A stretch of DNA of 64,000 nucleotides from Tubulanus polymorphus (GCF_964204645.1 NC_134036.1:4804600-4868599); one strand, 5' to 3'; shown: positions 13,821-64,000, counted from the first letter of the stretch. A program made the numbers and translations. Notes: generated by a model from the sequence alone, not told the origin.

Positions 13821-16800
13821 ATGTTGTTCGGTATGGAGCAGCGACTGAGAGCGCTGTTAATATCGTCGCTGATCGTCTGTCAAGTTGGCATCGCGCGCGC
13901 TGATCGCGCAGATTCTATCGAGGAATCGTCTGTGACGGTAAGTTCGTCTTGTAACAACACGTGGTACCCGCTAGATTCTACGTCCGGTTACATCGTATCA
14001 CCGAATTACCCTTCGTTAACGCGCGGTGTTGAATGTCGTTGGTTCTTCAACAGCTCTTTACCGGGAACTTTTCACGTCCAAGTTTACCACAACATCGAGC
14101 CGTCAATATTCTGTAGTGATAACTACCTTCTCGTCCACGAGTCTGATGACAGATTGTGCGGTGATGGAAAACATGAAATCCGCCGTAACGATTCGATCTC
14201 GTTGATATTTAGGAGTAACGTCGATGGTGCGCGAGGTAGTCGGGTTTATATCATATATCATTATGAACGAAGTCAAATTAATATTCTTCACGACTGTTCA
14301 AGGTACAATTTAATATTAAAGAGGCTAAAAGCTGAGCGGGGTTATGAATTCGCGATTCAAAAATTACGTAATTGCAAGTTGTTTGTTGAATGGAGCGGGA
14401 TGCCGCGAGGCTATGCGATGAATCTTACATTAATTGATATAGATTTCAAATCCTATCATGTTGGGGAGTCGTTAACGGTGGCCATAAGACTCCACGACGG
14501 ATGGAACACCGGTAGTGATCCTTTCGCTTTTATACCACAACAATCTGGACATCCACCTTCATCATTTTATACTAAAACTAACAAAGCTGTATTCGTTTTA
14601 CGGAAGATACATGTCCAGTTAAAGCTTTTAGTTCAGACGTATAGAATATCGGATTGGAACGTATCTAATCCGTTGATTCAGATCTCTAATAACGAGTCGG
14701 GAGTGCTCATTGCCGATGACAACAGTTTACACGTAATAACTCGATCGAAACACTTACACTGCTGGTCTATCACAGTGCAGGTGTTACAGTACGTCGTCTT
14801 CAACTGGACACGTGATCTCGTCACATCCGGTGACATCATCGGTGTATATAAACTAGAAGGGCTACACGTTGTGAGAACTGATATTTTATTAGGTTACAAC
14901 TACCTGGAATCGCTGAGTGTCAAAACTGACGGCTTTCTCGTCATACTGTGCGTTTTAAAAACAACAGTTCACGATGATGTAAGATTTGAAATAAGCTATA
15001 AATTGGAATCTATTTCGATAGACGATATCAAGGTCAACAACATTCGGGTGAGTATAACCTCTGTAATTATGTTACCCCTTATCGAAATAACATATATTAT
15101 CAAAAATCTGTCTGATAAACTTATTATTGGCGAACTTTAGGTACCCGTGAACCGAATGCGGTTTTTGATGCCATTCTGGCTGTTTCCGAAACAAAAAAAA
15201 GTATCGGTAAATTATCGCATCACTAGATACGAGTTTAAATGGAAAGTAGATATTAATGAAGAGAAAATGGGACTAACGGTTTTATCAGAGAACTGCGAGC
15301 GAGCTGGATTTTACATATTCGACGGTGGTAATTTCACGGCTAGACGATACGGTCCGTATTGTCCTCGTTTATACACCCCGTACGACCGTAACGTCGTCAG
15401 TCTGATTACATCCGGCGGGTCGGTTACTGTAGCAGAATACGCGTATAAGTGGAATGATCAGTTGACCGTCGATAAGGATTCACGCCTCAGATTTCGCCCT
15501 ACCGACTGCGACGGGTACATCCTCCGGGAGGGAGAACAGCGGGTCGATATGACGTCACACTGTCTCGTGATTACACCCGAAAACCGACGCCTTCCTTACA
15601 TCTACATATTATCAGAACACGAATATCAAATTGACCGATGTTTTCAGGGAGCTATACCATTCGGTTCATGTGGAACGTACGTTAGCTTGAGTAGTCAGTT
15701 GCTCAATAACAGTCTCGTATTAAACACTGTGAAAATGCGAGCCACGAGTTTATTCTGGAGGTATTATTTGATGGTTGAACTTCGGAGTAAATGTCAAAAA
15801 TTGAAATCTGCCGTTATAGAAATACTGGATGGGAGCGTATTCGAAGATGAATGCGGGTTGTTGCAATCACCAAATTATCCGGGATCATCTGAGTATCAAC
15901 ATCAACCACTATATTATAACTATCCTCAAGTGGTCAGACGGGGCAAATTTTCCTACCACCGGTTTCTAATCAAATACATAGACAGGGTACTGTGCACGAA
16001 ATCGGGTGTGAGTGACAAAGATCCGATTATCTACAAACAATCGATACATGAATCGCACAGTAGAAAAATCACACATGAGCATAGAATATGTGACAATAAC
16101 GCGATACCGGGACTTGTGTTTTATAGTTTAAGAGATGACAGTGTGTGGTTTGAGGTGAAACGTTATATCGCGACATTTCAAATACAATACACATTAGAAC
16201 AGTCGTTACCGGTAAAACAGTTTGAAAATGTCTGTAAATCAGGATTTCTAGATTCGGGAATTTCCTGCGTTAAATACATCAGAGATAAACGTCTGAATTG
16301 GGAGAAAGCTGAATTGTACTGTAGACAGAAGTACGCGGGACATCTACTCAGTATCAACTCAGAACAGGAAATGATTTCTATCAAACGATTATTCGCAACA
16401 GAACTTCTTCTAAATGCCTATTCACAGAAAGCGCTCATAATGATGATTGGATTAAAAATGAAGGTAAAATTCTTAATTTCTAAATCTATCTCGTTAAAAG
16501 AAATTTATATACCATTATGATGTTTTAATCATGAATTTGCCACTTAAACTTTTAGTCTACTTCTGGTTCTTACACGTGGACTGATGGGAAACCATTGAGC
16601 TACACGGAGTGGTATCAACCTACAAATAACGACACGATACCAGAAGTTATTCAAGGATTGATATCTCCTCTTAGAAAACAACCGATAAATGACGTCAATA
16701 TGCAGTGTACGGCGATGATACTGAATAATCCACGAGGATCAGCGAACTGGGTTCGATTCCCATGTGAAATCGAAGAGGTCCACACGAGTTTCATTTGCGA

Positions 16801-19798
16801 AACTGAAAGAATTGATATCGAAAATAGAACAGCATTAATGTTGAACATAACCAAAAACGACACATTTCTAATACGGGAAAATCCATTTCAAAATATTGAT
16901 TTCAATGAATCGAGCTGTACGTTTGGTTTGGTAACAATAGACAGACAATGCTATCAAATACTGACAGACTGGAACACACATCGAGGTCTTGATATAAAAA
17001 GTGCGACAGAGATGTGTAATGGCGTCCGGGCCGAAGTAGGTAGTATAAACAGTAATAGTGAAAAAGATATCTTAAATTTGATAACAACATTTCAATATCA
17101 ACATCAATATAGCTCTGTACTAACGATGACTTCTTATGACACACTGCAAGTTATAAACCCAATAATCAGCAGAGATGAAATTACTTATATTCAATCAGTT
17201 AAATGGATGATGAAACAGTTTGATAACGCAACAGATACAGCGCATTCTGTTTTGTGTTCATACAATGTAACTGTTGAAGAGTTAGCTTCTATAAGCGGTT
17301 GTAAATCGTGGCAGTTTAAATGTAACGATCAAAGATGTATCAGCGACCATCGCGTATGTGACACCAGACGCGACTGTCGACACGGCGAAGATGAACTGAG
17401 TTGTTCGCATATCAATTTACAAAGTCAGTTTCAATGCGATGATGGTCAGATTATATCAGTAAGTGGTTTCTGCGATTTCATACAGGATTGTGTGGATGGT
17501 TCTGATGAGAAATCTTGTTTTCATCCCCCATGTTTGTCTGAACAATTTCGCTGCAAAAGTGGTCAATGTTTCAGTAGGTCAAACAGATGTGATGGAGTCA
17601 CTGATTGTAAAGACGGATCAGATGAAATGGGATGCACTACTATAATGTGTCAGGGGTTCCTGTGTAACAGTGGAGACTGTATTAGTTCTCAGTTGTATCA
17701 GGATGGTGTCGTGGATTGTAGTGGAAGCCTCGAAGAAGATGAATTAGTAACAACTACTAATGTTTCAGTGAATCCTACTGTTCAGTGCAATAATGAAAAC
17801 TACTGCACAACTAACTTCACAAATCTCTGTACGGAATCAGATGAACAAAGATGTTCTTTCAATTCTCCTCATTGTTATTCAAGACGTCACAGGTGTATTC
17901 TAGAAAGAATGACAAATGGCTTCCCAGTTTGTCGAAATCTTGGGCACGTTTTGAGATGTGAAGAATTTGAATGTCCAGCTGGTACTGCAAAATGTCCAGC
18001 ATCGTACTGTATACCGATCAGACAGGTGTGCGATGGTCAATCAGATTGTCCTAATTCAGAAGATGAACAAAACTGCGAAACATTTTCGTGTCCAGGAATG
18101 TTTAAATGTGGTCAGGAAAATCGATGTATTCCACAATCTGAAGTTTGTGACGGTTTCGTCAATTGTAAACATACAACTGATGACGAGGCTTTCTGTAATG
18201 TCACGTGTCCGATGGGCTGTAGATGTCAAGGTCATTTGATTGATTGTGCCAATGCTGGTTTAAAAGATGTAACTGGTCTTTTCTCGACATCAAGTCGAGT
18301 TTTAATTCTGTCAAATAACAGAATCATTCTGAGCGAGTCGACGTTTGCTTCATTCGTTTATCTTCGAATGCTTAACAGCTCTTCCAATGAATTGTCTTAT
18401 ATTTTACCGAACTCGTTTACAAACCTGCATAATCTACATACATTAGATCTTACATACAACAACTTAACATCATTATCTACAAACACATTCATCGGGTTGT
18501 ATAATTTAAAAGAGTTATTGATAACTGAAAATCCTATACGCCATTTAGACGACAATACCTTTCAAGATTTAATGTCATTACAATTTCTGGACCTTCGAAG
18601 GCTTTCGGTTTTGCTGCTTGGTAGAGATGTATTTAGAGGTTTATCTGCATTACAGTCGTTGAATATCAGCAGCAACAGAATCCATCATATTTCACGATAT
18701 GCTTTTTCAGGATTAAATGAACTTAGAATTCTCGATATTACCAACAACTCTAAATTTATTTTGACAGAAAGAGGCGTTTTCGATAATCTAACATCATTAG
18801 TCTCGTTAACGTCTGATGCTTACAAATTTTGCTGCATGGCTCCGAATGTTGACCAGTGTCTTCCTGAAGCTGATCAATTTTCCTCTTGTTCTGATCTGAT
18901 GGGTAACACAGTCATCATCTGGGTCATCGCTTCATTCAGTTTCTTCGCGAACAGTATCGTCATTTTATTTCGTCTTCGATCAATTCGACTTTCATCCTCC
19001 GAGAAACGTAACACCTCTTCCGATATCTTAATCATTAATATCGCAGCTTGTGATTTTCTCATGTCGATTTATTTGTTTTTGATCGCGGGTGCGGATTACA
19101 TTTATAAAGAAGTTTATTTCCTAAATTCTGAAACTTGGACGGACAGTTCATTATGTAGTTTCGCTGGAGTTACGGTCGCTATTTCTTGTGAAGGCTCGTT
19201 GACGTTTCTATTCATTCTTACACGTCATAGATTCTCGAATATCGTTAACCCATTTTCTGGAAGCCCGATTACATCACCGAGATATGTGTCCTTTATTTGT
19301 GGCGTTTGTTGGGTTACTATAAGTACAATCTCTATAATACCGCTGTCTAAATTATCTTATTTCGGTATTAAATTCTACGGTACTACTGGAGTTTGTTCAC
19401 CTATGAATTTAATATCAATTGATGTCAACGCCTGGCAATATTCATTCGCTATTTTTTCCGTCTTCAACTCTGGTTTACTTGCTGCAATAATGGCGACTTA
19501 TGCGCAAATGTACCGACTCGTATCTGGAAGCAGGTCTGGTTCGGGTAGAATCGACCCTACCGAACTGGTTTTAGCACGTAGGAGTTTGGTGATTAATCTT
19601 TGTAATTTATTTTGCTGGCTGCCGTTAATTATCGTTCAGTTTTGCGCGGTATTACGGGTAGAAATACCGAATCAGGTGGCGGCTTGGCTGGCGGTTCTTT
19701 TCTTACCGATCAACTCGTCCCTCAGTCCCCTTCTTTACACAATACTGACTATCGATATGAAATCCATACGAGCAAAAACTAAACGCTTTCGGCAATAA
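13821..19798 (+). CDS. CUB/C-type-lectin/LDLa/LRR GPCR (GRL101-like LGR) copy 1, ~1930 aa
   Basis: Exons 13821-15047, 15141-16463, 16556-19798; phase-0 GT-AG introns of 93 and 92 nt. Signal peptide; CUB (GYIVSPNYP..ECRW..RLCG); CUB (CGLLQSPNYPG); CTL (LNWEKAELYC..GHLLSI..IGL|..YTWTDG..FICE); ~6 LDLa (e.g. CDGVTDCKDGSDE); LRRNT plus ~7 LRR; hinge YKFCC..FSSCSDLM; 7TM with CWLP. Confidence 0.92.
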
Positions 19799-21253: not shown

Positions 21254-21269
21254 TGATGGTAATTACTGG
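21254..21269 (+). promoter_or_regulatory. Invariant upstream motif TGATGGTAATTACTGG (representative copy)
   Basis: Identical at 13407, 13560, 21254, 28903, 36686, 44348, 51820, 59495; exactly 220 nt before the first ATG in copies 2-7; contains the palindrome GTAATTAC. Confidence 0.5.
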
Positions 21270-21473: not shown

Positions 21474-24400
21474 ATGTTGTTCGGTATGGAGCAGCGACTG
21501 AGAGCGCTGTTTATAGCGTCGCTGATCGTCTGTCGAGTTCGCATCGCACGCGCTGATCGCGCAGACTCTATCGAGGAATCGTCTGTGACGGTAAGTTCGT
21601 CTTGTAACAACACGTGGTACCCGCTAGATTCTACGTCCGGTTACATCGTTTCACCAAATTACCCTTCGTTAACGCGCGGCGTTGAATGTCGTTGGTTCAT
21701 CAACAGTTCTTTTACGGGGACTTTTCACGTCCAAGTTTACTACGATATTGGGCTTTCAATATTCTGTAGTGATAACTACCTTCTTGTTTACGAGTCTGAA
21801 AATAGATTGTGCGGTGTTGGTAAACATGAAATCCGCCGTAACGATTCGATCTCGTTGATGTTTAGGTGTAACGTCGATGGTGCGCGAGGTAGTCCGGTTT
21901 ATGTCATATATAGTTATGAACGAAGCCGATTGAAAATCAGTCACGACTGTTTAAGACACAATATAAGATTGGGGAGGCTAAAAGCTGAGCAGGGTTACAA
22001 ATACACCGTAGGAAAAATAAAGAATTGCCAGTTATTTGTTGAATGGAGCGGCATGCCGCGAGGTTATGCGTTGAATCTAACATTTATTGATACAACTTTT
22101 AGATTCTATTATGGTTGGAAATCATTGTCGGTAACCATGAAAATACACGACGGTTGGAACACCAGCAATGAACCTTTAGCGCATATACCATACCAATCTG
22201 GACATCCAGCATCATCATTTTATACAAAAACAAACAAAGCTGTTTTGGTGTCACTGCTGACACATCTACAGTCACTGCTTTTAGTACAGACGTATAGAAT
22301 ATCTGATTGGAACGTCTCTAATCCGTTGATTCAGGTTTCTAATAACGAGTCGGGAGTGATCGTTCCCGATGACAACAGTTTACACGTAATAACACGATCA
22401 AAACACTTACACTGCTGGTCTATCACAGTGCAGGTGTTACAGTACGTCCTCTTCAACTGGACACGTGATCTCATCACATCCGGTGACGTCATCGGTGTAT
22501 ATAAACAAGAAGGGTTACGCGTTGTAGGAACTGCTATTTCACTCGGTAACAACTACCTGGAATCGCTGAGTGTCAAATCTGAAGGCTTTCTCGTCATACT
22601 GTGCATTTTGAGAGCAGGCGTCCGCAAAAATGCGAGATTTGAAATAAACTATAAGATTGAATCTATTTCGATAGATGATTTAAAGGTCATCGACCGTGAG
22701 GTGAGTATCACCTGTGAAATAATTTTACCTCGTATTGAAATAAACTGAAATTATTAAAAATAAAAACTGTCTGATATACTCGAAATATTGGCTAAATCTA
22801 GGTACCGGTGAACCAGATGTTTTTTAAGACGCCGTTCACGCTGTTTCCAAAACGAATGAAAATCGTTGTGAATTATCGCGTCAGTAGATATGAGTTTAAA
22901 TGGAAAGTGGATATCTATGAAGAAAATATGGAACTAACAGTTTTGTCAGAGAACTGCGAGCGAGCTGGATTTTACATATACGACGGCGGTAATTTCACGG
23001 CTAGACGATACGGTCCGTATTGTCCTCGTTTATGGACATACAACCATAACGTGGTCAGTCTGATTACATCAGGTGGATCGGTTACTGTAGTAGGATACGC
23101 TTATAACTGGGATGATCAGTTAACAGTCGGTAAAATATCATATCTCAGATTTCGTCCTACCGACTGTGACGGGTACGTTTTAAAGGAGGGAGAACGTCAG
23201 ACCAATATGACGTCACACTGTCTCGTGATTACGCCGGAAAATCGACACCTTCCTTTGAGAAATATTAATATATTATCAGAACACGAATATCAAATTGACC
23301 GATGTTTTCAGGAACATCTATCTTTTGGTTCTTGTAGCAGGTATCTGCGATTGAGTAGTCAGGTTCTTAATAACGGCCTCGTTTTAAACACTGTGAAAAC
23401 ACGTGTGACGAATGTATTCTGGTTTTATCCCTTATTAGTTAAACTACGACGTAAATGTCAACGATCGAAGATAGTGGCAGGCGTTATTGGCCAGACACCA
23501 TTGAATGATAATTGCGGAATCATTCAGTCACCAAACTACCCGGGATCAGCAGGGCAAACCAGGGAAACATTAACATATTATTTTCCATCAAAAAAAACTC
23601 GACGAATTCAGTATTACAGATTTGTGATAAAACATTTAGAAAAGATACGATGTGAGAAATCGCATCCTTTAGACAAGGACCCGATTTTAATAAAGCAACC
23701 CATTGCTGATACAACTAGCGATCAAACACATCAACACGAAAATAGAATATGTGACGATAACGCGATACCGGGACTTGTATTCTATAGTTTAAGAGATCAC
23801 AACCTGTGGTTTGAGTTGAAAAATTACATACCTACATTTCAAATACAATACATATTAGAACAGTCGTTGCCGATAAAACAGTTTAAAAATGTCTGTCAAT
23901 CGGGATTTCTAGATTCGGGAATTTCATGCGTAAAACACATCAGTGATAACCGTCTGAATTGGGAGAATGCTGAATTGTATTGTAGACAGAAATACGCGGG
24001 ACATCTACTCAGTATCAACTCACAACAGGAAATGATTAACATTAAAACATTATTCGCTACCGAACTTCTTAAACAGGCATATTCACAGAAAGCGCTCGTA
24101 ATAATGACTGCAATGAAACTACAGGTAAACTTTACCATAAACTCGTAAGAAAGTTTGTATGTAAGATATTGATGTTATTTTTAATCACGTGTTTGCAACT
24201 TAATTTTTCAGCCCGTTTCTGGTTATTACACGTGGACGGATGGTAAACCATTGAGCTACACAGAGTGGTATAAACCTACAAATAACGACACGATACCAGA
24301 AGTTATTCAAGGATTGATATCTCCTCTCAGAAAACAACCGATAAATGACGTCAATATGCCGTGTACGGCGATGATACTGAATAATCCACGAGGATCAGCG

Positions 24401-27400
24401 AACTGGGTTCGATTCCCCTGCGAAATCGAAGAGGTTCATACGAGTTTCATTTGCGAAACTGAAAGATTTGCCATCGAAAATAGAACAGCAACAATGCGGA
24501 ATGTAATCAAAAACGACACATTTCTATTTCAAAATACTGATTTCAACGATTCGAACTGTACGATTGGTTGGGTAAACATAGATAAACAATGCTATCAAAT
24601 ACTGACAGATTGGAACAGATATCGAAGTCTTGATTCAAAAACTGCTACAGAGATGTGTCATAGTATCGGATCTGATATGGGCAAAATATTCCGTAACACA
24701 GAAAATGACATCTTAAATTTGATAAAATCATTTCAATATCAACATCAATATAGCTCTATACTAATGATGACTTCCAATGACAGACTGCAAGTTATAAACC
24801 CAATAATCACTAGAGATGAAATTACTTATATTCAATCAGTTAAATGGACGACGAAACAGTTTGATAATGCGACAGATACAGCGCATTCTGTTTTGTGTTC
24901 ATACAATGTAACTGATGAAGAGTTAACTTCTATAAGCGGTTGTAAATCGTGGCAGTTTAAATGTAACGATCAAAGATGTATAAGCGACCATCGCGTATGT
25001 GATACCAGACACGACTGTCAACACGGTGAAGATGAACTCATTTGTACGGATGTCAATTTACACAGTCAGTTTCAATGCGATGATGGTCAGATTATATCAA
25101 TAAGTGAATTCTGTGACTTCATACAGGATTGTCGGGATGGTTCGGATGAGGAATCTTGTATTCATCCCCCGTGTTTGTCTGTACAATTTCGCTGCACAAG
25201 TGGTCAATGTATCAGTAGGTCTAACAGATGTGATGGATTCACTAATTGTAAAGACGGATCAGATGAAATGGGATGCATTACTGAAATGTGTCAGGGGTTC
25301 CTGTGTAACAGTGGAGACTGTATTAGTTCTCAGTTGTATCAGGATGGTGTCGTGGATTGTAGTGGAAGCCTCGAAGAAGATGAATTAGTACCAACTACTA
25401 ATGTTACATTGAATCCTACTGTTCAGTGCAATAATGAAAACTACTGCACAACTAACTTCACAAATCTCTGTACGCAATCAGATGAACAAAGATGTTCCTT
25501 CAATTCTCCTCATTGTTATTCAAGACGTCACAGATGTATTCTAGAAAGAATGACAAATGGTTTCCCGGTTTGTAGAAATCTTGAGCACGTATTGAGATGT
25601 GAAGAATTTGAATGTCCAGCAGGTACTGCAAAATGTCCAGCATCGTACTGTATACCGATCAGACAGGTGTGCGATGGTCAATTGGATTGTCCTAATTCAG
25701 AAGATGAACAAAACTGCGAGACATTTTCGTGTCCAGGAATGTTTAAATGTGGTCAGGAAAATCGGTGTATTACACAATCTGAAGTTTGTGACGGTTTCGT
25801 GAATTGTAAACATACAACTGATGACGAGGCTTTCTGTAACGTCACGTGTCCGATGGGCTGTAGATGTCAAGGTCATTTGATTGATTGTGCCAATGCTCGT
25901 TTAAAAGATGTAACTGGTCTTTTCTCGACATCAAGTCGAGTTTTAATTCTGTCAAATAACAGAATCATTCTGAGCGAGTCGACGTTTGCTTCATTCGTTT
26001 ATCTTCGAATGCTTAACATCTCTTCCAATGAATTGTCTTATATTTCACCGAACTCGTTCACAAACCTGCATAATCTGCATACATTAGATCTTACATACAA
26101 CAACATAACATCATTATCCACAAACACATTCATCGGGTTGTATAATTTAAAAGAGTTATTGATAACTGAAAATCCTATACGCCATTTAGACGACTATACT
26201 TTTCAAGATTTAATGTCATTACAATTTCTGAACCTTCAAGGGCTTTCGCTATTGCTGCTTGGTAGAGATGTATTTAGAGGTTTATCTGCATTACAGTCGT
26301 TGAATATCAGCAGTAACAGAATCCATCATATTTCACGATATGCTTTTTCAGGATTAAATGAACTTAGAATTCTTGACATAACCAACAACTCTAAGTTCAT
26401 TTCCACAGCAAGAGGAGTTTTCATCAATCTGACATCATTAGTCTCGCTAACGTCTGACGCTTACAAATTTTGCTGCATGGCTCCGAATGTTGACCAGTGC
26501 CTTCCTAAAGCTGATCAGTTTTCCTCATGTTCTGATCTGATGGGTAACACAGTCCTCAGAGCTATCATCTGGGTCATCGCTGCGTTCAGTCTCTTCGCAA
26601 ACACGATTGTCATTTTATTTCGTCTTCGATCAATTCAACTTTCGTCCTCCGAAAAGCGTAACACATCCTCCGATATCCTTATTATCAATATCGCAGCTTG
26701 TGATTTTTTGATGTCGATTTATTTGTTTTCGATCGCGGGTGCAGATTACGTTTTTAAAGGAGTTTATTTCTTGAATTCTGAAACTTGGACGGACAGTTCA
26801 TTGTGTAGTTTCGCCGGAGTCACGGTGACTATTTCTTGTGAAGGCTCATTGACGTTTCTATTCATTCTAACACGGCATAGATTCTCGAATATCGTTAACC
26901 CATTTTCTGGAAGCCCGATTAAATCACCGAGATATGTGTCCATTATTTGTGGCGTGTGTTGGGTTATTATAAGTACAATCTCTATAATACCGCTGTCACA
27001 ATTATCTTATTTCGGTATTAAATTCTACGGTACTACTGGAGTTTGTTTACCTATGAATTTAATATCAATTGATGTCCACGCCTGGCAATATTCATTCGCT
27101 ATTTTTGCGGTATTCAACTCGTTCATACTCGCTACGATAATGACGACTTATGCGCAAATGTACAGACTCGTATCTGGAAGCAGGTCTGGTTCGGGTAGAA
27201 TTGACCCTACCGAACTGATTTTAGCACGTAGAAGTTTAGTGATAAATCTTTGTAATTTTTTTTGCTGGCTGCCGTTAATTACCGTTCAGTTTTGCGCGGT
27301 ACTACGGGTAGAAATACCGAATCAGGTGGCGGCTTGGCTGGCGGTTCTTTTCTTACCGATCAACTCGTCCCTCAATCCCCTTCTTTACACAATACTGACT

Positions 27401-27448
27401 ATCGATATGAAATCCATACGAGCAAAAACAAAACGCTTACGGCAATAA
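21474..27448 (+). CDS. GRL101-like CUB/CTL/LDLa/LRR GPCR copy 2, ~1928 aa
   Basis: Exons 21474-22700, 22802-24124, 24212-27448; introns 101 and 87 nt, phase 0; frame open. Confidence 0.92.
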
Positions 27449-35100: not shown

Positions 35101-35113
35101 ACGCTTACGTTAA
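29123..35113 (+). pseudogene. GRL101-like receptor copy 3, frameshifted in exon 2
   Basis: Exons 29123-30349, 30451-31778, 31865-35113. A CT duplication at 30614-30617 (gagctCTgga vs gagctgga in all other copies) makes exon 2 1328 nt. Exons 1 and 3 are open. A sequencing error cannot be excluded. Confidence 0.8.
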
Positions 35114-50500: not shown

Positions 50501-50555
50501 AATACTGACTATCGATATGAAATCCATACGAGCAAAAACTAAACGCTTACGTTAA
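44568..50555 (+). CDS. GRL101-like CUB/CTL/LDLa/LRR GPCR copy 5, ~1933 aa
   Basis: Exons 44568-45794, 45896-47221, 47307-50555; introns 101 and 85 nt, phase 0; frame open. Confidence 0.92.
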
Positions 50556-52039: not shown

Positions 52040-55000
52040 ATGTTGTTTGGTATGGAGCAGCGACTGGGAGCGCTGTTTATAGCGTCGCTGATCGTCTGTC
52101 AAGTTCGCATCGCGCGCGCTGATCGCGCAGACTCTATCGAGGAATCGTCTGTGACGGTAAGTTCGTCTTGTAACAACACATGGTACCCGCTAGATTCTAC
52201 GTCCGGTTACATCGTTTCACCGAATTACCCGTCGTTAACGCGCGGTGTTGAATGTCGTTGGTTCATCAACAGTTCTTTACCGGGGACTTTTCACGTCCAA
52301 GTTTACCACGATATCGAGCTTTCAATATTCTGTAGTGATAACTACCTTCTCGTCCACGAGTCTGATAACAGATTGTGCGGTGATGGAAAACATGAAATTC
52401 GCCGTAACGATTCGATCTCGTTGATGTTTAGGAGTAACGTCGATGGTGCGCGAGGTAGTCGGGTTTATGTCATATATAGTTATGAACGAAGCCAATTGAA
52501 AATCAGTCACGACTGTTTAAGACACAATATAAGATTGGGGAGGCTAAAAGCTGAGCAGGGTTACAAATACACCATTGGAAAAATACAGAATTGTCAGTTA
52601 TTTGTTGAATGGAGCGGAATGCCGCGAGGTTATGCGTTGAATCTAACATTTATTGATACATCTTTTAAATTCTATTATGGTTGGAAATCATTGTCGGTAA
52701 CCATGAAAATACACGACGGTTGGAACACCAGCAATGAACCTTTAGCGCATATACCACACCAATCTGGACATCCAGCATCATCATTTTATACAAAAACAAA
52801 CAAAGCTGTTTTGGTGTCACTGCTGACACATCTACAGTCATTGCTTTTAGTACAGACGTATAGAATATCAGATTGGAACGTCTCTAATCCGTTGATTCAG
52901 ATCTCTAATAACGAGTCGGGAGTGCTCATTCCCGATGACAACAGTTTACACGTAATATTCCGATCAAAAAACTTACACTGCTGGTCTATCACAGTGCAGG
53001 TGTTACAATACGTCTTCTTCAACTGGACACGCGAACTCGTCATATCCGGTGACGTCATCGGTGTATATAAACTAGAAGGGTTACACGTTGTAGGAACTGA
53101 TATTTTACTCGGTTATAACTACCTAGAATCACTGAGTGTTAAATCTGACGGTTTCCTCGTGATAATGTGCGTTTTGAAAGCAACAGTCCACGAAAATGTG
53201 AGATTTGAAATAAACTATAGAATGGAATCTCTTTCGATATATGATATAAAGGTCATAAACCAGGTAAATATCACCTGTGAAATTTTGTTATCCCGTATCG
53301 ATACGACTTGAAATCATTTAAGATAAAAACTGTCTGATATGCTTGTAATATTGGCCAACTCTAGGTACCGGTGAACCGAATGTGGTTTATGACGCAAGAC
53401 TCGCTGTTTCCAAAACGAAATAAAGTCTCGGTGAATTATCGCGTCACTACATACGAGTTCAAATGGAAAGTTGATATCTATGAAGAGAATATGGAACTAA
53501 CAGTTTTATCAGAGAACTGCGAGCGAGCTGGATTTTACATATTCGACGGTGGTAATTTCACGGCTAGACGATACGGTCCGTATTGTCCTCGTTTATTCAC
53601 CCCGTACGACCGTAACGTCGTCAGTCTGATTACATCAGGTGGATCGGTTACTGTAGTAGGATACGCTTATAACTGGGATGATCAGTTAACAGTCGGTAAG
53701 ATATCATATCTCAGATTTCGTCCTACCGACTGCGACGGGTATGTTTTAAAGGATGGAGAACATCGGATCAATATGACGTCACACTGTCTCGTGATAACAC
53801 CGGAAAATCGACGCCTTCCTTTGAGAAATATTTATATATTATCAGAACACGAATATCAAATTGACCGATGTTTTCAGGATCATCTATCATTCGGTTCTTG
53901 TAGCAGGTATCTGAGATTGAGTAGTCAGGTTCTTAATAACGGTCTCGTATTAAACACTGTGAAAACACGTGTGGCGAATGTATTCTGGTTGTATTCATTA
54001 TTAGTTAAACTACGGCGTAAATGTCAACGATCGAAGATAGTGGCAGGCGTTATTGGCCAGACACCATTGAATGATAATTGCGGAATCATTCAATCACCAA
54101 ACTACCCGGGATCAGCGGGGCAAACCAGAGAAGCATTACTATATAGTTTTCCAAGTAGGAACATTCAGCGAATTCTGTACTACAGATTTGTAATCAAATA
54201 TACTGATATGATACAATGTGAGAAAACGAATCCGTGGGACAAGGACCCGATTGTAATAAACCATTCCATTATTGATAGAACTAGCGGTCAAACACATCAA
54301 CACGAAAATATAATATGCGACAATAACGCGATACCGGGACTTGTGTTTTATAGTTTAAGACATGAGAACCTGTGGTTTGAGGTGAAAAATCACATACCTT
54401 CTTTTCAAATACAATACATATTAGAACAGCCGTTACTGATAAAACAGTTTGAAAATGTCTGTAAATCGGGATTTCTAGATTCGGGAATTTCATGCGTAAA
54501 ATACATCAGAGATGAACGTCTAAATTGGGAGAATGCTGAATTGTATTGTAGACAGAAGTACGCGGGACATCTACTCAGTATCAACTCACAACAGGAGATG
54601 ATTTCTATCAAACGATTATTCGCAACAAAACTTCTTCTAAAGGCATATTCACAGAAAGCGCTCTTAATGATGATTGGATTAAAAATGAAGGTAAAATTCT
54701 TAATTTCTAAAACTATCTCGTTAAAAGAAATTTATATACCATCATGATGTTTTAATCATGAATTTGCCACTTAAACTTTTAGTCTACTTCTGGTTCTTAC
54801 ACATGGACTGATGGGAAACCATTGAGCTACACGGAGTGGTATCAACCTACAAATAACGACACGATACCTGAAGTTATTCGAGGATTGATATCACCTCTAA
54901 GAAAACAACCGATAAATGACGTCAATATGCCGTGTACGGCGATGATACTGAATAATCCACGAGGATCAGCGAACTGGGTTCGATTCCCATGTGAAATCGA

Positions 55001-58000
55001 AGAGGTCCACACGAGTTTCATTTGCGAAACTGAAAGAATTGATATCGAAAATAGAACAGCATTAATGTTGAACATAACCAAAAACGACACATTTCTAATA
55101 CGGGAAAATCCATTTCAAAATATTGATTTCAATGACTCGAGCTGTACGTTTGGTTTGGTAAGAATAGACAGACAATGCTATCAAATACTGACAGACTGGA
55201 ACACACATCGAGGTCTTGATATAAAAAGTGCGACAGAGATGTGTAATGGCGTCCGGGCCGAAGTAGGTAGTACAAACAGTAATACTGAAAAAGATATCTT
55301 AAATTTGATAACAACATTTCAATATCAACATCAATATAGCTCTGTACTAACGATGACTTCTTATGACACACTGCAAGTTATAAACCCAATAATAACCAGA
55401 GATGAAATTACTTATATTCAATCACTAAAATGGACGATGAAACAGTTTGATAACGCGACAGAAATAGCGCATTCTGTTTTGTGTTCATACAATGTAACTG
55501 ATGAAGAGTTAGCTTCTATAAGCGGTTGTAAATCGTGGCAGTTTGAATGTAACGATCAAAGATGTATCAGCGACCATCGCGTATGTGATACCAGACACGA
55601 CTGTCGACACGGCGAAGATGAACTGAGTTGTTCGCATATCAATTTACACAGTCAGTTTCAATGCGATGATGGTCAGGTTATATCAATAAGTGGTTTCTGT
55701 GATTTCATACAGGATTGTGTGGATGGTTCTGATGAGGAATCTTGTTTTCATCTCCCGTGTTTGTCTGAACAATTTCGCTGCAAAAGTGGTCAATGTTTCA
55801 GTAGGTCAAACAGATGTGATGGAGTCACTGATTGTAAAGACGGATCAGATGAAATGGGATGCACTACTAAAATGTGTCAGGGGTTCCTGTGTAACAGTGG
55901 AGACTGTATTAGTTCTCAGTTGTATCAGGATGGAGTCGTGGATTGTAGTGGAAGCCTCGAAGAAGATGAATTAGTAACGGCGACTAATGTTATAGTGAAT
56001 CCTACTGTTCAGTGCAATAATGAAAACTACTGCACAACTAACTTCACAAATCTCTGTACGGAATCAGATGAACAAAGGTGTTCTTTCGATTCTCCTCATT
56101 GTTATTCAAGACGTCACAGATGTATTCTAGAAAGAATGACAAATGGCTTCCCAGTTTGTCGAAATCTTGAGCACGTTTTGAGATGTGAAGAATTTGAATG
56201 TCCAGCAGGTACTGTAAAATGTCCAGCATCGTACTGTATACCGATCAGACAGGTGTGCGATGGTCAATCAGATTGTCCTAATTCAGAAGATGAGCAAAAC
56301 TGCGAGACATTTTCTTGTCCAGGAATGTTTAAATGTGGTCAGGAAAATCGGTGTATTCCACAATCTGAAGTTTGTGACGGTTTCGTCAACTGTAAACATA
56401 CAAAAGATGACGAGGCTTTCTGTAATGTCACGTGTAAGAAGGGCTGTAGATGTCAAGGTCATTTGATTGATTGTGCGAATGCTCGTTTAAAAGATGTAAC
56501 TGGTCTTTTCTCGACATCAAGTCGAGTTTTAATTCTGTCGAATAACAGAATTATTCTGAGCGAGTCGACGTTTTCATTATTCGTTTATCTTCGAATGCTT
56601 AACATCTCTTCCAATGAATTGTCTCATATTTTACCGAACTCGTTCACAAACCTGCATAATTTACATACATTAGATCTTACATACAACAACATAACATCAT
56701 TATCCACAAACACATTCATCGGTTTGTATAATTTAAAAGAGTTATTGATAACTGAAAATCCTATACGCCATTTAGACGACAATACCTTCCAAGATTTAAT
56801 GTCATTACAAATTCTGAACCTTCAAGGGCTTTCAGTTTTGCTGCTTGGTAGAGATGTATTTAGAGGTTTATCTGCATTGCAGTCGTTGGATATTAGCAGT
56901 AACAGAATCCATCATATTTCACGATATGCTTTTTCAGGATTAAATGAACTTAGAATTCTCGATATCACCAATAACTCTAAATTTATTTTGACTGAGACAG
57001 GCGTTTTCGATAATCTAACATCATTAGTCTCGTTAACGTCTGATGCTTACAAATTTTGTTGCATGGCATCGAATGTTGACCAGTGTCTTCCTGAAGCTGA
57101 TGAATTTTCCTCCTGTTCTGATCTGATGGGTAACACAATCCTCAGAGCTATCATCTGGATCATTGCTTCATTTAGTTTCTTCGCGAACAGTATCGTCATT
57201 TTATTTCGTCTTCGATCAAATCGACTTTCATCCTCCGAGAAACGTAACACATCTTCTGATATCTTAATCATCAATATCGCAGCTTGTGATTTTCTCATGT
57301 CGATTTATTTGTTTTCGATCGCGGGTGCAGATTATATTTATAAAGGAGATTATTTCCTAAATTCTGAAACTTGGACGGATAGTTCATTGTGTAGTTTCGC
57401 CGGAGTCACGGTGACTATTTCTTGTGAAGGCTCATTGACGTTTCTATTTATTCTAACACGGCAGAGATTCTCGAATATCGTTAATCCATTTTCTGGAAGC
57501 CCGATTACATCACCGAGATATGTGTGCATTATTTGTGGCATGTGTTGGGTTACTATAAGTACAATCTCTATAATACCGCTGTCACAATTATCTTATTTCG
57601 GTATTAAATTCTACGGTACTACTGGAGTTTGTTTACCTATGAATCTAATATCAATTGATGTCAATGCCTGGCAATATTCATTCGCTATTTTTGCGGTATT
57701 CAACTCGTTCATACTCGCTACGATAATGGCGACTTATGCGCAAATGTACAGACTCGTATCTGGAAGCAGGTCTGGTTCAGGTAGAATCGATCCTACCGAA
57801 CTGATTTTAGCACGTAGAAGTTTAGTGATAAATCTTTGTAATTTATTTTGCTGGCTGCCGTTAATTATCGTTCAGTTTTGCGCGGTATTTCGGGTAGAAA
57901 TACCGAATCAGGTGGCGGCTTGGCTGGCGGTTCTTTTCTTACCGATCAACTCGTCCCTCAATCTCCTTCTTTACACAATACTGACTATCGATATGAAATC

Positions 58001-58034
58001 AATACGAGCAAAAACTAAACGCTTTCGGCAATAA
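52040..58034 (+). CDS. GRL101-like CUB/CTL/LDLa/LRR GPCR copy 6, ~1933 aa
   Basis: Exons 52040-53263, 53365-54690, 54783-58034; introns 101 and 92 nt, phase 0; frame open; TM7 NPxxY changed to NLLLY. Confidence 0.9.
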
Positions 58035-59714: not shown

Positions 59715-62700
59715 ATGTTGTTCGGTATGGAGCAGCGACTGAGGGCGCTTTTAATATTGTCGCTGATCGTCTGTCAAGTTCGCATCGCGCGCGCTGATCG
59801 CGCAGACTCTATCGAGGAATCGTCTGTGACGGTAAGTTCGTCTTGTAACAACACGTGGTACCCGCTAGATTCTACGTCCGGTTACATCGTTTCACCGAAT
59901 TACCCTTCGTTAACGCGCGGTGTTGAATGTCGTTGGTTCATCAACGGTTCTTTACCGGGAACTATTCGGGTCCAAATTTACTACGATATCGAGCCGTCAA
60001 TATTCTGTAGTGATAACTACCTTCTCGTCTACGAGTCTAATAACAGATTCTGCGGCGATGGAAAACATGAAATTCGCCAAAACAATTCGATCTCGTTGAT
60101 GTTTAGGAGTAACGTCGATGGTGCGCGAGGTAGTCGGGTATACATCATATATCGTTATAAACGAAATCATTTGTTAATTAGTCACGATTGCCCCAAATAT
60201 CTCCGATTGAAAGAAATACAAACATCAATAGGATACAGATATCAGATAAGCTACTTACTAACGTGCAAATTGTTTTTGGAATGGATCGGGATGCCGGATG
60301 ATTTTGGCATGAACCTGACCTTAAGAAAGCTAAGTTTGAAAGTAAGCCCAGGCGCTGATCCAGCGACGACTGTTAAAATCCACGACGGATGGAACACCAG
60401 CAGTGAACCTATAGGTCTTATACGAGAACAAACCGGGCATCCACCGTCATCATTTTATACTAAAACAAGCCAAGCCGTCATATCACTGCTATATCCTCGA
60501 CTGTTTTTTGAAACACAGCTTCTAATTCAAATGTACGAAATATCGGATTGGAACGTCTCTAATCCGTTGATTCGCATCTCTAATAACGAGTCGGGAGTGC
60601 TTATTCCCGATGAAAACAGTTTACACGTAATAACTCGATCGAAACACTTACACTGCTGGTCTATCACAGTGCAGGTGTTACAGTACGTCGTCTTCAACTG
60701 GACACGTGATCTCGTCACAACCGGTGACGTCAAAAGTGTATATAAACTAGAAGGGTTACGCGTTGTAGGAACTGATATTTTACTCGGTTACAACTACCTA
60801 AAATCACTGAGTGTCAAATCTGACGGATTTCTCGTCATACTGTGGGTTCTGAAAGCAACCGTTCACGACAATGCGAGATTTGAAATAAACTATAAAATTG
60901 AATCTATTTCGATAGGTGATGTTAAGGTCAACAACCGTCAGGTGAGTAACAACTGTGAAATTATGTTACTCTGTGTCAGAAATTTATGTCAACTTGATCT
61001 GTCTGATATGCTTAATATTGGAAACCCTAGGTCACTGTGAACCGAATGTGGTCAATGAAAACAAACTCGCTGTTTCCAAAACGAAATAAAGCCTCGGTGA
61101 ATTATCGCTTCACTAGATACGAGTTTAAATGGAAAATTGATATTCATGACGAAAAAATGGAACTAACAGTTTTATCAGAGAACTGCGAGCGAGCTGGATT
61201 TTACATATTCGACGGTGGTAATTTCACGGCTAGACGATACGGTCCGTATTGTCCTCGTTTATACGCCCCGTACGACCGTAACGTGGTCAGTCTGATTACA
61301 TGAGGTGGATCGGTTACTGTTGTAGGATACGCTTATAATTGGGACGGTCAGTTGACAGTCGATAAGGAATCATATCTCAGATTTCGTCATACCGACTGTG
61401 ACGGGTATGTTTTAAAGGAGGGAGAACGTCAGATCAATATGACATCACACTGTCTCGTGATTACACCCGAAAACCGACGCCTTCCTCTAAGAAATATTCA
61501 CATTTTATCAGAACACGAATATCAAATTGACCGATGTTTTCAGGATTCTCTCTTATTCGGTTCTTGTAGCAGGTATCTGACATTGAGCAGTCAGTATCTC
61601 AATAACAGTCTAGTAATAAACACCGTTAAAACACAATTCATGGTTCCATTCTGGTATAATCCTTTATTGGTGAAACTACGTCGTAAATGTCAACGATCCA
61701 AGAAAGTTGACGTATATGGTATCAACCAGGCACCACTGAATGATAATTGCGGAATCATTCAGTCACCAAACTACCCTGGATCAGCAGGGTACACCAGGGA
61801 AGCATTAATATATAGTTTTCAATCGAGCATCACTCGACGAATTCAGTACTACAGATTTGTGATAAAACATATTGAAATGATACGATGTGAGAAATCACAC
61901 CCGCGAGCCAAGGACCTGATTCTAATAAAACAATCCATTACTGATACAACTAGCGGCCAAACACATCAACGCGAAAATAGAATATGTGACAATAACGCGT
62001 TACCAGGACTTGTGTTTTATAGTTTAAGACATGAGAACCTCAGGTTTGAGGTGAAATATTACATACCGACATTTCAAATACAATACACATTAGAACAGTC
62101 GATACGGGTAAAACAGTTTAAAAATGTCTGTAAATCAGGATTTTTAGATTCGGGAATTTCATGCGTAAAATACATCAGAGATGAACGTCTGAATTGGGAG
62201 AATGCTGAATTGTACTGTAGACAGAAGTACGCGGGACATCTACTCAGTATCAACTCACAACAGGAAATGATTTCTATTAAAAGATTATTCGCTACAAAGC
62301 TTCTTCTAAAGGCATATTCACAGATAGCGCTCATAATGATGATTGGATTAAAACGGCAAGTAAGTCATGAAATAAGTCATTAGAAAGTTTGTATATAAGA
62401 ATTTGATGTTATGTTTAATCACGTGTTTGCAACTTAATTTTTCAGCCCGTTTCTGGTTATTACACTTGGACTGATGGAAAACCATTGAGCTACACAGAGT
62501 GGTATAAACCTACAAACAACGACACGATACCAGACGTTATTCAAGGATTGATATCTCCTCTTAGAAAACAACCGATAAATGACGTCAATATGCCGTGTAC
62601 GGCGATGATACTGAATAATCCACGAGGATCAGCGAACTGGGTTCGATTCCCCTGCGAAATCGAAGAGGTTCATACGAGTTTCATTTGCGAAACTGAAAGA

Positions 62701-64000
62701 ATTTTTATCGAAAATAGAACAGCAACAAAGTGGAATGTAACCAAAAACGACACATTTCTGATACGGGAAAATGCATTTCAAGATATTAAATTCAATGAAT
62801 CGAGCTGTACGATTGGTTTAATAAGCATAGACAGACAATGCTATCTCTTACTAACGGACTGGAACACACATCGAGGTCTTGATATAAAAACTGCGACAGA
62901 GATGTGTAATGGCGTCCGGGCCGAAGTAGGTAGTATTAAAATTAATATTCAAAAAGATATCTTAAATTTGATAACAGCATTTCAATATGAACATCAATAT
63001 AGCTCTATACTAACGATAAGGTCTAATGACAGACTGCAAGTTATAAACCCAATAATCACCAGAGATGAAATTACTTATATTCAATCAGTTAAATGGATGA
63101 TGAAACATTTTGATAATGCGACAGATACAGCGCATTCTGTTTTGTGTTCATACAATGTAACTGATGAAGAGTTAACTTCTATAAGCGGTTGTAAATCGTG
63201 GCAGTTTAAATGTAACGATCAAAGATGTATCAGCGACCATCGCGTATGTGATACCAGACACGACTGCCAACACGGTGGAGATGAACTCAATTGTACGGAT
63301 ATAAATTTCCACAGTCAGTTTCAATGCTATGATGGTCAAGTGATATCAATAAGTGGTTTCTGTGATTTCATACAAGATTGTGCGGATGGTTCTGATGAGG
63401 AATCTTGTATTCATCCCCCGTGTTTGTCAGAACAATTTCGCTGCACAAGTGGTCAATGTTTCAGTAGGTCAAACAGATGTGATGGAGTCACTGATTGTAA
63501 AGACGGATCAGATGAAATGGGATGCACTACTGAAATGTGTCAGGGGTTCCTGTGTAACAGTGGAGACTGTATTAGTTCTCAGTTATATCAGGATGGTGTC
63601 GTGGATTGTAGTGGAAGCCTCGAAGAAGATGAATTAGTAACAACTACTAATGTTACAGTGAATCCTACTGTTCAGTGCAATGATGAAAACTACTGCACGA
63701 CTAACTTCACCAATCTCTGTACGGAATCAGATGAACAAAGGTGTTCTTTCAATTCTCCTCACTGTTATTCAAGACGTCACAGATGTATTCTAGAAAGAAT
63801 GACAAATGGTTCCCCAGTTTGTAGAAATCTCGAGCACGTATTGAGATGTGAAGAATTTGATTGTCCAGCTGGTACTGTAAAATGTCCAGCATCGTACTGT
63901 ATACCGATCAGACAGGTGTGCGATGGTCAATCAGATTGTCCTTATTCAGAAGATGAACAAAACTGCGAGACATTTTCATGTCCAGGAATGTTTAAATGTG
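59715..64000 (+). pseudogene. GRL101-like receptor copy 7, nonsense codon in exon 2, 3' end outside the window
   Basis: Exons 59715-60941, 61031-62359, 62446->64000; introns 89 and 86 nt. TGA at 61301-61303 where other copies have Ser (TCA/TCC/TCG) in LI(T/S)SGG. Confidence 0.8.

Follow-up and report, generated by a model that had tools for sequence, protein, structure and literature searches.

What do the long open reading frames (ORFs) that recur along this part of the genome of Tubulanus polymorphus (Nemertea) encode, and what might the family to which they belong be for? The window, the whole 64,000-nt stretch of DNA that was analysed, contains seven head-to-tail units of ~7.65 kb each from position 13,821 to its end, all on the plus strand, and every unit carries a triplet of long plus-strand ORFs, giving a recurrence of seven. 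These are units 1 to 7 of an array with a total of 17 units:

13821-19798, plus strand: unit 1, intact gene (exons 13821-15047, 15141-16463 and 16556-19798; introns of 93 and 92 nt; TM7 motif SPLLY, not NPLLY)
21474-27448, plus strand: unit 2, intact gene and reference copy (exons 21474-22700, 22802-24124 and 24212-27448)
29123-35113, plus strand: unit 3, probable pseudogene (exons 29123-30349, 30451-31778 and 31865-35113; exon 2 frameshifted by a 2-bp insertion)
36906-42894, plus strand: unit 4, intact gene (exons 36906-38132, 38234-39568 and 39655-42894)
44568-50555, plus strand: unit 5, intact gene (exons 44568-45794, 45896-47221 and 47307-50555)
52040-58034, plus strand: unit 6, intact gene (exons 52040-53263, 53365-54690 and 54783-58034; TM7 motif NLLLY)
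59715-64000, plus strand: unit 7, probable pseudogene (exons 59715-60941, 61031-62359, the second of them with an in-frame stop at codon 91, and a third that begins at 62446 and continues beyond the window to G000:C12:4870293)

Each unit consists of three exons separated by two introns of 85-101 nt, both GT-AG and in phase 0, with donors GTGAGT, GTAAAT, GTAAGT or GTAAAA and acceptors YAG that are kept across the window units. The same intron phase and splice sites occur in 16/16 array units resolved by pattern search, and the three-exon plan is present in 20/20 paralogues taken from 8 contigs. Exon 1 opens with an ATG followed by a hydrophobic leader (MLFGMEQRLRAL...), ORF2 and ORF3 have neither a start nor a leader of their own, and intron 2 interrupts a C-type lectin-like domain (CTLD), the start of exon 3 aligning with the second half of an uninterrupted sea urchin lectin domain. 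The phase-0 GT-AG introns, the ATG with its leader and the intron-split domain support the prediction that there is one spliced gene per unit, with a product of 409 + 441-445 + 1,078-1,083 residues (~1,930 aa). The initial annotation had likewise joined the three ORFs through phase-0 GT-AG introns into one ~1,930-aa receptor, repeated at least seven times; its ORFs, splice sites and repeats hold, but just five of the seven window copies are intact, unit 3 being frameshifted and unit 7 carrying a nonsense codon. Sequencing runs that contain unit-1 words gave fragmented DNA unitigs, one contig of which runs through donor 1 unspliced; coverage in the single run that may be RNA was zero. Five joints in the run contigs have non-canonical ends and lie away from the predicted introns, and thus probably reflect contig assembly across paralogues.

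The predicted order of the protein is signal peptide, CUB-1, a variable CUB-like module, two modules without fold assignment, a variable CUB, a conserved CTLD, a variable degenerate CTLD, LDLa repeats, LRRs, hinge and 7TM, as laid out here for unit 2:

21474-21554, plus strand: signal-peptide-like leader, residues 1-27 (MLFGMEQRLRALFIASLIVC...), with a modelled helix at residues 2-19
21603-21923, plus strand: CUB-1, exon 1 residues ~44-150, conserved among copies (Pfam CUB and family profile)
21924-22298, plus strand: HV1, hypervariable beta-sandwich, exon 1 residues 151-275 (fold search; pLDDT 63-86)
22299-22700, plus strand: beta-rich region without fold assignment, exon 1 residues 276-409 (residues 276-375 conserved at 82-87% identity, tail variable; low pLDDT)
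22802-23470, plus strand: region without fold assignment, exon 2 residues 1-223 (cysteines fully conserved; weak language-model CUB-like lead)
23471-23875, plus strand: HV2, hypervariable CUB, exon 2 residues 224-358 (fold search; CG..SPNYP start motif)
23876-24124, plus strand: N-terminal half of CTLD-1, exon 2 residues 359-441 (Pfam Lectin_C positions 2-30; family profile)
24125-24211, plus strand: intron 2, which splits CTLD-1 (87 nt, GT..AG, phase 0)
24212-24466, plus strand: C-terminal half of CTLD-1, exon 3 residues 1-85, almost invariant (alignment with the urchin CTLD; dN/dS 0.11)
24485-24931, plus strand: HV3, a degenerate second CTLD (CTLD-2), exon 3 residues 92-240 (family profile; dN/dS 0.57-0.77)
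24932-25846, plus strand: LDLa block, exon 3 residues 241-545 (Pfam Ldl_recept_a E = 2e-33; 4-5 repeats)
25847-26491, plus strand: LRRs, exon 3 residues 546-760 (Pfam LRR_8 E = 1e-29; RXFP1 alignment)
26492-27448, plus strand: hinge, rhodopsin-type 7TM and short tail (Pfam 7tm_1 E = 2.7e-21; HRF at the DRY position; NPLLY present)

The C-terminal part identifies the class of receptor. Among LGRs, type C1 has one LDLa, type C2 (GRL101-type) several, and types A and B none. In Tubulanus a rhodopsin-type 7TM is preceded by an LRR ectodomain and a hinge, as in type C, and several LDLa repeats lie N-terminal of the LRRs, as in type C2; the cysteine framework of the LDLa block is 100% conserved, with Pfam Ldl_recept_a E-values of about 1e-33 to 1e-34. 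The best solved relative is RXFP1 (7TMW; E = 3e-73, one stretch from the LRRs to TM7), as compared to 3e-37 for FSHR and 7e-24 for TSHR. When the 7TM was searched on its own, the best outside matches were named GRL101 (Patella, 5e-43, 36% identity; a Macrobrachium GRL101-like protein, 37.5%), and RXFP2b was matched at 4e-33 with 32% identity. In a maximum-likelihood tree of the 7TM all Tubulanus sequences group together as a single clade (support 100/100), which sits on its own long branch; the deep forks of this tree, built without a type A or B outgroup, have support of 33/8. Judged from its sequence, the receptor is a type-C (GRL101-like) LRR GPCR, and both the GRL101/RXFP-related core and the lineage-specific expansion put forward in the initial annotation agree with these matches and with the clade.

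E/DRY at the end of TM3 and NPxxY in TM7 are signalling motifs of class A GPCRs. R3.50 is invariant and the acidic residue of DRY is replaced by H, Q or Y in 25/25 paralogues, a set made up of the six window copies with a complete exon 3 and 19 copies at other loci; NPLLY is kept save for SPLLY in unit 1 and NLLLY in unit 6, both intact window copies. The acidic residue missing from all 25 and the NPxxY altered in two intact window copies count against the account of function given below.

For the distal ectodomain, homology and fold searches were carried out exon by exon, each analysed separately. CUB-1 reaches 27.5 bits with Pfam CUB (E = 4e-6; cut-off 21.4) in unit 4 and stays under the cut-off in the remaining units, and its family profile matches a cubilin CUB at E = 1.4e-11 and MASP-1 at 1.6e-6. 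For HV2, which is 34-57% identical among paralogues, the best 20 matches of the fold search are all CUB domains (Z 7.0-9.2, 99-109 residues aligned), so that CUB-1 is assigned to the CUB class by sequence profile and HV2 by fold. HV1, with 36-54% identity among paralogues and a dS of 1.07, is probably a CUB-like module, given that the best nine matches to its modelled fold are CUB domains at a marginal Z of 7.3-7.8. For exon 1 residues 276-409 there are weak language-model leads to CUB-like clusters. AlphaFold2 models of whole exons had a mean pLDDT of 48 and 45 and were usable at residues ~150-280 of exon 1 and ~240-355 of exon 2; the low confidence of the structure models save for these two segments is a further point against the overall account. 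A profile-profile comparison of exon 1 with exon 2 found no internal CUB repeats, the one match being an 18-residue SPNYP motif with a probability of 4.6%. Exon 1 had 24 weak matches among 1.84 billion representative proteins, all in the CUB segment, and for exon 2 no homologues were found among proteins 242-771 aa long. Of the several degenerate CUB-like units described initially, HV1 gains a marginal fold match; support for the others is weak, and the profile comparison gives no internal repeat.

The two lectin-like domains assign to the C-type lectin-like fold by sequence profile and, in the case of CTLD-1, also by the urchin alignment. The N-terminal half of CTLD-1 matches Pfam Lectin_C at E = 0.0065-0.012, under the cut-off, and the CTLD-1 profile matches snake-venom CTLDs (convulxin, echicetin) at about 1e-4 (1.4e-4); HV3 matches the CTLDs of the yolk-sac IgY receptor (1.4e-9) and PLA2R (3.5e-4), and also NKG2D and CD69. 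True C-type lectins have EPN or QPD, a WND motif and acidic Ca2+ site-2 ligands. CTLD-1 has QPI, MPC and WVR where EPN/QPD, ExC and WND are expected, reading ...KQPIND..MPC... and ...NWVRFPC in 25/25 paralogues, so that the Ca2+/sugar-binding motifs of true C-type lectins are absent from CTLD-1 in all 25, whereas the CTLD of the urchin homologue keeps QPD and WHD. Because CTLD-1 is also among the most conserved parts of the protein, lectin-style glycan pattern recognition is not indicated.

The family extends well beyond the window. We found 272 matches to an exon-1 motif in the genome and 0 in a reversed control, giving about 270 copies, a family far larger than the at least seven repeats counted earlier; more than 100 copies were scored genome-wide. 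In the array 14/17 units are intact, with reading frames of ~5,800 nt (~1,930 codons), and the disabled copies amount to 3/17 array units and 3/20 paralogues from elsewhere, roughly 15-18%. Whole units differ by 0.9-6% between copies and each copy is its own mosaic. Segment dN/dS is 0.11-0.77, with 0.11-0.27 across the lectin C-half, LDLa, LRR and 7TM; the highest segment values are 0.57-0.89, no segment exceeds 1, and the highest single 50-codon window is 1.00; all segments are under purifying selection. Cysteines are 88-100% conserved across copies. The spacers are almost as conserved as exon 3, and the three cysteine-framed modules HV1, HV2 and HV3 are more diverged than these non-coding spacers and are shuffled among copies. 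The picture of a variable distal ectodomain on a constant GPCR unit is thus upheld, in that the variability is mostly in the ectodomain and the signalling core is constrained, with the addition that the main lectin domain is also near-invariant.

How far is this receptor new? GRL101 of Lymnaea stagnalis, an orphan type C2 LGR (Tensen et al. 1994, as cited in PMC8286064 and PMC11863921), has the same succession of multiple LDLa repeats, LRRs, hinge and rhodopsin-type 7TM. The Tubulanus receptors differ from it by ~1,080 extra N-terminal residues (CUB, CUB-like and two lectin-like domains), by about 5 LDLa repeats (Pfam) as compared to 12, and by about 270 copies as compared to one or a few. A sea urchin protein named GRL101 (Strongylocentrotus purpuratus XP_030854276.1, 1,734 aa) has CUB, C-type lectin, five LDLa, LRR and 7TM in the same order. 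A stretch of 904 residues that starts midway through the lectin domain, with its second half, and ends at TM7 aligns with the Tubulanus receptor at 30% identity (E = 2e-96). No significant pairwise similarity to the urchin N-terminus was seen for exon 1 or for most of exon 2, the lectin motifs are QPD and WHD in the urchin as against QPI and WVR in Tubulanus, and the cluster that includes the urchin protein has just one full-length member from the urchin. The initial annotation had left room for an undescribed architecture; CUB + Lectin_C + LDLa + LRR + 7tm_1 is already found in the urchin protein. RXFP1 (PDB 7TMW) shares LRR, hinge and 7TM in one continuous alignment and is a mechanistic template for LDLa/LRR-mediated activation, but it has one LDLa, no CUB or lectin modules, an ERY motif, a peptide-hormone ligand and a single gene.

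Expansion has precedents as well. Apple snails (Ampullariidae) have 29-132 tandem GRL101 genes per species, which arose in lineage-specific bursts and are expressed in tentacles and labial palps (PMC6573481). They resemble the Tubulanus family in their tandem GRL101 expansion, and differ in phylum, in number (29-132 versus about 270) and in having sensory-organ expression data on record. A tentacle-specific GRL101-like receptor is reported from Charonia tritonis (PMC13403566). In Biomphalaria sudanica the SudRes2 region holds a GRL101-like cluster with copy-number and truncation differences between haplotypes (PMC12297450); its tandem GPCRs also have C-type lectin-like, LDLa and LRR ectodomains, but there are 12 genes as compared to 17 in the array and about 270 genome-wide, CUB modules are not reported, and an association with resistance exists for SudRes2 only. 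Tandem GRL101 expansion and the CUB-CTLD-LDLa-LRR-7TM core are each already known elsewhere.

For the family as a whole, we favour with moderate confidence the account of a 17-unit array belonging to a GRL101-like family of ~270 genes, with distinct ligands for the paralogues and a chemosensory role. Such a family would evolve as its genes duplicate in tandem, now and then decay into pseudogenes, and recombine or undergo gene conversion, processes that homogenise the signalling core and the spacers while the three hypervariable ectodomain modules stay diverse and are reshuffled. The diversity of ligands, the mechanism of activation and the chemosensory role are those that we infer: the ligand, extracellular and probably a macromolecule, would differ from paralogue to paralogue and be bound by the variable CUB and lectin-like surfaces, and binding would be relayed via LDLa, LRR and hinge to a 7TM and a G-protein output that all paralogues share, in the way suggested for relaxin receptors. 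By analogy with the relatives, chemoreception of environmental, prey or conspecific cues is the most likely role and is preferred over an immune one. The family has features of a chemosensory repertoire in its about 270 genes, tandem arrays and roughly 15-18% disabled copies, sensory expression being on record for the snail relatives only; this published expression in sensory organs makes chemoreception at least as likely as immunity.

The main alternative, possible but clearly less probable, is that the same genes serve in immunity, symbiosis or allorecognition, the variable CUB and lectin-like modules binding microbial or non-self surfaces and triggering a G-protein response in defence cells. 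The domain types are frequent in complement and pattern-recognition proteins, the hypervariable cassettes diverge beyond the spacers and recombine between copies, and 12 tandem CTL-LDL-LRR GRL101-like GPCRs lie inside the SudRes2 schistosome-resistance region (PMC12297450), although the validated SudRes2 variants are in an adjoining Zn-RING-IAP gene and not in the GRL101 genes. The immune flavour of CUB, CTLD, LDLa and LRR and the link of a related snail cluster to parasite resistance (PMC12297450) count against the chemosensory account. Set against an immune role are the invariant main lectin domain without sugar or Ca2+ ligands, the sensory-organ expression of relatives, and the eight TIR loci in the genome, none of them near the family's clusters. 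An immune repertoire, one of the roles first suggested, predicts diversifying selection in the recognition modules, but dN/dS is never above 1.

Three further readings fare worse. That the receptors are endocrine, for insulin-, relaxin- or IGF-like peptides, has in its favour a type-C LGR core nearest RXFP1 and Veenstra's proposal of GRL101 as an IGF receptor (PMC8286064); it is very unlikely in view of the few conserved hormones as compared to about 270 divergent paralogues with hypervariable distal modules, the single-copy GRL101 of ambulacrarians and the separate long branch of the Tubulanus clade. We consider it just as improbable that most of the array is amplified DNA without function, be it a segmental duplication or decaying genes held alike by concerted evolution: the disabled units, the spacers nearly matching exon 3 in conservation and the lost DRY acidic residue would suit decay, but the 14/17 long reading frames, the dN/dS of 0.11-0.27 in the lectin C-half and core, and the conserved cysteines and splice sites argue otherwise. 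Repetitive arrays misassemble easily, yet there is little chance of an artefact, be it a few copies multiplied by the assembly or units that each hold three separate genes, given the 0.9-6% differences with a distinct mosaic in each copy, the unit-1 words in separate sequencing runs (possibly from the same sample as the assembly), the want of a start or leader in ORF2 and ORF3, and the lectin domain that is split by intron 2 and contiguous in the urchin.

Although GRL101 was first described more than 30 years ago, receptors of its type remain orphans, and the roles proposed for them in the literature (IGF receptor, chemoreceptor, immune receptor) conflict. About 270 largely intact paralogues provide natural variation for mapping ligand-binding surfaces, and are usable in this way because the cysteine scaffold is fixed and it is three defined modules that vary. 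The family also exposes gaps in the public gene models, the matched RefSeq protein of 689 aa being a truncated model of a ~1,930-aa gene, and a family that makes up about 0.8% or more of the genome affects any nemertean gene-family or GPCR census. Apple snails and Biomphalaria provide the two earlier cases of massive expansion; this third, independent one comes from another phylum. The family looks like a diversified sensor repertoire, and comparable expansions are published in snails (PMC6573481, PMC12297450).

More speculatively, and rather doubtfully, the ~270 genes may form a germline-encoded combinatorial recognition system, in which three old hypervariable CUB and lectin-like cassettes, kept diverse by selection, are reassorted among paralogues by gene conversion on a homogenised LDLa-LRR-7TM chassis. 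To our knowledge no GPCR family has yet been shown to act as such a system. If this combinatorial reading is true, the ribbon worm would gain a large repertoire for non-self or environmental macromolecules that acts through G-protein signalling.

Twenty of the 24 ORFs of at least 200 aa in the window make up a recurring plus-strand triplet (~440, 450 and 1,070 aa) that runs from position 13,815 on with a period of ~7.65 kb. DNA alignments of the ORF boundaries revealed conserved splice sites, with GTGAGT or GTAAAT donors at junction 1, GTAAGT or GTAAAA donors at junction 2 and YAG acceptors, giving exons of 1,224-1,227, 1,323-1,335 and 3,237-3,252 nt per unit. The two introns of the window units are 85-101 nt long, both phase 0, and the same splice site, phase and size pattern occurs in 16 of the 17 units of the complete array (those resolved by pattern search). 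Exon 1 opens with an ATG and a hydrophobic leader, neither ORF2 nor ORF3 has a start or leader of its own, and the start of exon 3 (YTWTDGKPLSYTEWY...) aligns to the latter half of a lectin domain that is uninterrupted in a sea urchin protein, placing intron 2 inside a C-type lectin-like domain (CTLD-1). For these reasons we interpret each unit as a single gene; the splice sites, leader and split CTLD bear out the initial annotation, which had joined the three ORFs through conserved phase-0 GT-AG introns. Splicing and expression are predicted from sequence logic only. Three sequencing runs from one study contained 31-37% of the words of unit 1, all in short DNA unitigs; aligned to unit 1, one unitig spans donor 1 unspliced and none has a joint at a predicted intron. 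One possible RNA run contained none of unit 1's words.

Units 1, 2, 4, 5 and 6 are intact in the window. Exon 2 of unit 3 is frameshifted by a 2-bp insertion, and unit 7 carries a stop in exon 2 (codon 91) and an exon 3 that runs past the window end. At least seven tandem copies had been proposed, and the array in fact comprises 17 head-to-tail units (C12:4,818,420-4,946,770), 14 of them with uninterrupted exons. The neighbouring units 10 and 11 (G000:C12:4887202-4900802) share 99.1% identity across 6 kb, suggesting that they were duplicated or converted very recently. The following features lie upstream of unit 1:

Window 263-1441, plus strand: small intronless rhodopsin-type GPCR gene, 392 aa (Pfam 7tm_1, E = 7.8e-8; weaker Srx/Srw matches).
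Window 3456-4067, minus strand: ORF with a Tctex-1 family (dynein light chain) domain (E = 1.6e-26).
Window 9360-10361, plus strand: small intronless rhodopsin-type GPCR gene, 333 aa (Pfam 7tm_1, E = 1.3e-13; weaker Srx/Srw matches).
Window 13311-13405: (AT)n microsatellite of ~95 nt with short direct repeats on its flanks, ~420 nt upstream of the unit 1 ATG.

The two intronless GPCR genes sit in a ~23-kb gap between the plus-strand array and an upstream minus-strand array of the same receptor family. None of the 16 spacers within the array contains an (AT)8 or longer run. Elsewhere in the genome, a pair of TIR-domain ORFs (763-764 aa) is located 7.3 kb from each other (G000:C3:8716799-8724582); just eight TIR loci were detected genome-wide.

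The family extends well beyond this array. Genome searches yielded 102 scored matches among 375 candidates for exon 1, all scored ones with at least 66% identity, and 88 scored matches among 604 candidates for the LRR-7TM region. The exon-1 motif G-Y-I-V-x-P-N-Y-P, searched as a degenerate DNA pattern, has 272 occurrences in the genome and none in the reversed control. All 20 paralogues fetched, from eight contigs, have the three-exon plan, with disablements in 3. Other long arrays are located at G000:C6:18.65-22.14 Mb and G000:C9:2.27-5.03 Mb (spacing ~10-12 kb), and the C9 subfamily is 54-58% identical to unit 2 in exons 1 and 2 and ~71% in exon 3. With ~7.65 kb for each unit, the family accounts for at least ~0.8% of this palaeonemertean's 268-Mb genome. 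These extended GRL101-type receptors are a real and large family, expanded in tandem and mostly intact. The best outside match to exon 3 is a T. polymorphus RefSeq protein that maps to the genome at 99% and 92% identity. This protein, XP_074658304.1 (689 aa, annotated 'uncharacterized'), shares an identical 7TM with a three-exon paralogue (G000:C9:2804300-2811100); it has no counterpart of exons 1 and 2 and leaves out 378 nt within exon 3. It is thus a shortened model of a complete three-exon gene, and by this comparison public gene models for the family appear truncated.

Searches and structure models were run exon by exon rather than on the spliced protein. Exon 3 contains Pfam Ldl_recept_a (4-5 stretches, E about 1e-34), LRR_8 (E about 1e-29) and 7tm_1 (E about 1e-21). 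Its LRR-hinge-7TM region matches human RXFP1 (7TMW) in one stretch at 3e-73, far better than glycoprotein-hormone receptors, which places it among the type C LGRs. For the 7TM on its own, the top outside matches are Patella GRL101 (36%, 5e-43) and a Macrobrachium GRL101-like protein (37.5%), both ahead of fish RXFP2b (about 32%, 4e-33). Maximum-likelihood analysis of the 7TM unites the Tubulanus sequences in a single long-branched clade (100/100), and the deep forks give no GRL101/RXFP placement. Thus type C stands from the initial class assignment, and C2 (GRL101-type) is suggested by multiple LDLa repeats and best-match similarity rather than by resolved phylogeny. The TM3 DRY position reads H/Q/Y-R-F/Y with an invariant arginine, and TM7 NPLLY is conserved except in two otherwise intact copies, where the change may affect signalling:

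Window 19700-19798: unit 1, SPLLY.
Window 57930-58034: unit 6, NLLLY.

CUB-1 (exon 1 aa ~44-150) reaches 27.5 bits for Pfam CUB in unit 4 and falls below cut-off in other units; its family profile matches cubilin at 1.4e-11. AlphaFold2 models were poor overall (pLDDT 48 for exon 1, 45 for exon 2), with one usable all-beta segment each. For exon 2 aa 224-358 the top 20 fold matches are CUBs (Z 7.0-9.2; unrelated folds Z ≤6.9), and for exon 1 aa 151-275 CUB matches (Z 7.3-7.8) are barely above generic jelly-rolls. Language-model look-alikes of exon 1 aa 276-409 and exon 2 aa 1-223 lean CUB-like, below the reliable range. Of the two clear and several degenerate CUBs initially proposed, CUB-1 and the exon-2 CUB hold, exon 1 aa 151-275 is a marginal CUB candidate, and profile-profile comparison detected no internal repeat between exons 1 and 2. 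The end of exon 2 is the N-half of CTLD-1 (Pfam E about 0.007; profile versus PDB 1.4e-4). A degenerate second CTLD, also proposed initially, was recovered at exon 3 aa 92-240 (profile versus yolk-sac IgY receptor CTLD 1.4e-9, PLA2R 3.5e-4). Calcium-dependent lectins carry EPN/QPD, ExC and WND at matching CTLD positions. The almost invariant C-half of CTLD-1 carries QPI, MPC and WVR instead, making canonical sugar binding unlikely.

All cysteines show 88-100% conservation across 25 paralogues, and mean pairwise identity is 70-93% in CUB-1, CTLD-1, the LDLa block and the 7TM versus 34-57% in exon 1 aa 151-275, exon 2 aa 176-350 and exon 3 aa 76-200. Across the 17-unit array dN/dS is below 1 in all segments: 0.11 in the CTLD-1 C-half, 0.16 in the 7TM, 0.23 in LDLa and 0.27 in LRR, and 0.26-0.48, 0.42-0.59 and 0.57-0.77 in the hypervariable modules HV1 (exon 1 aa 151-275), HV2 (exon 2 aa 224-358) and HV3 (exon 3 aa 92-240). 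The highest 50-codon window reaches 1.00. dS is much higher in the variable modules (HV1 1.07 versus 0.11-0.16 in its flanks), and the non-coding spacers (85-99% identical, median 91%) are more conserved than these modules. Copies carry reassorted cassette types: the distance matrices of HV1, HV2 and HV3 are mutually uncorrelated (rho -0.27 to 0.22), unlike those of LDLa, LRR and 7TM, which vary together (rho 0.40-0.56). The pattern is most simply explained by concerted evolution that keeps the chassis uniform, with old variable cassettes retained and swapped among copies; it is compatible with selection for repertoire diversity but is no proof of positive selection.

The core architecture is not unique to the Tubulanus lineage: a sea urchin protein named GRL101 by UniRef shows the same succession of CUB, Lectin_C, five LDLa, LRR and 7tm_1. 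Its CTLD retains QPD and WHD where CTLD-1 has QPI and WVR. In ambulacrarians GRL101 is single-copy and a proposed IGF receptor (PMC8286064). In the favoured mechanism, modelled on relaxin receptors, the variable CUB and lectin-like surfaces would capture diversified ligands, and capture would be relayed through the LDLa/LRR/hinge unit to a common 7TM. A chemosensory role appears most likely, because the only expression data on expanded relatives indicate sensory organs: many of the 29-132 tandemly duplicated GRL101 genes of apple snails show high expression in the cephalic tentacles and the labial palps (PMC6573481), and a GRL101-like receptor of Charonia tritonis is tentacle-specific (PMC13403566). 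The main rival is immune or non-self recognition; the SudRes2 schistosome-resistance locus of Biomphalaria sudanica contains tandem clusters of CTL-LDL-LRR GRL101-like GPCRs (PMC12297450). Our literature search found no report of this family in nemerteans, and no homologues of the extra ~600-800 lineage-restricted N-terminal residues were detected elsewhere. New here are the phylum, the scale (about 270 copies), these N-terminal residues and the three-cassette mosaic pattern.
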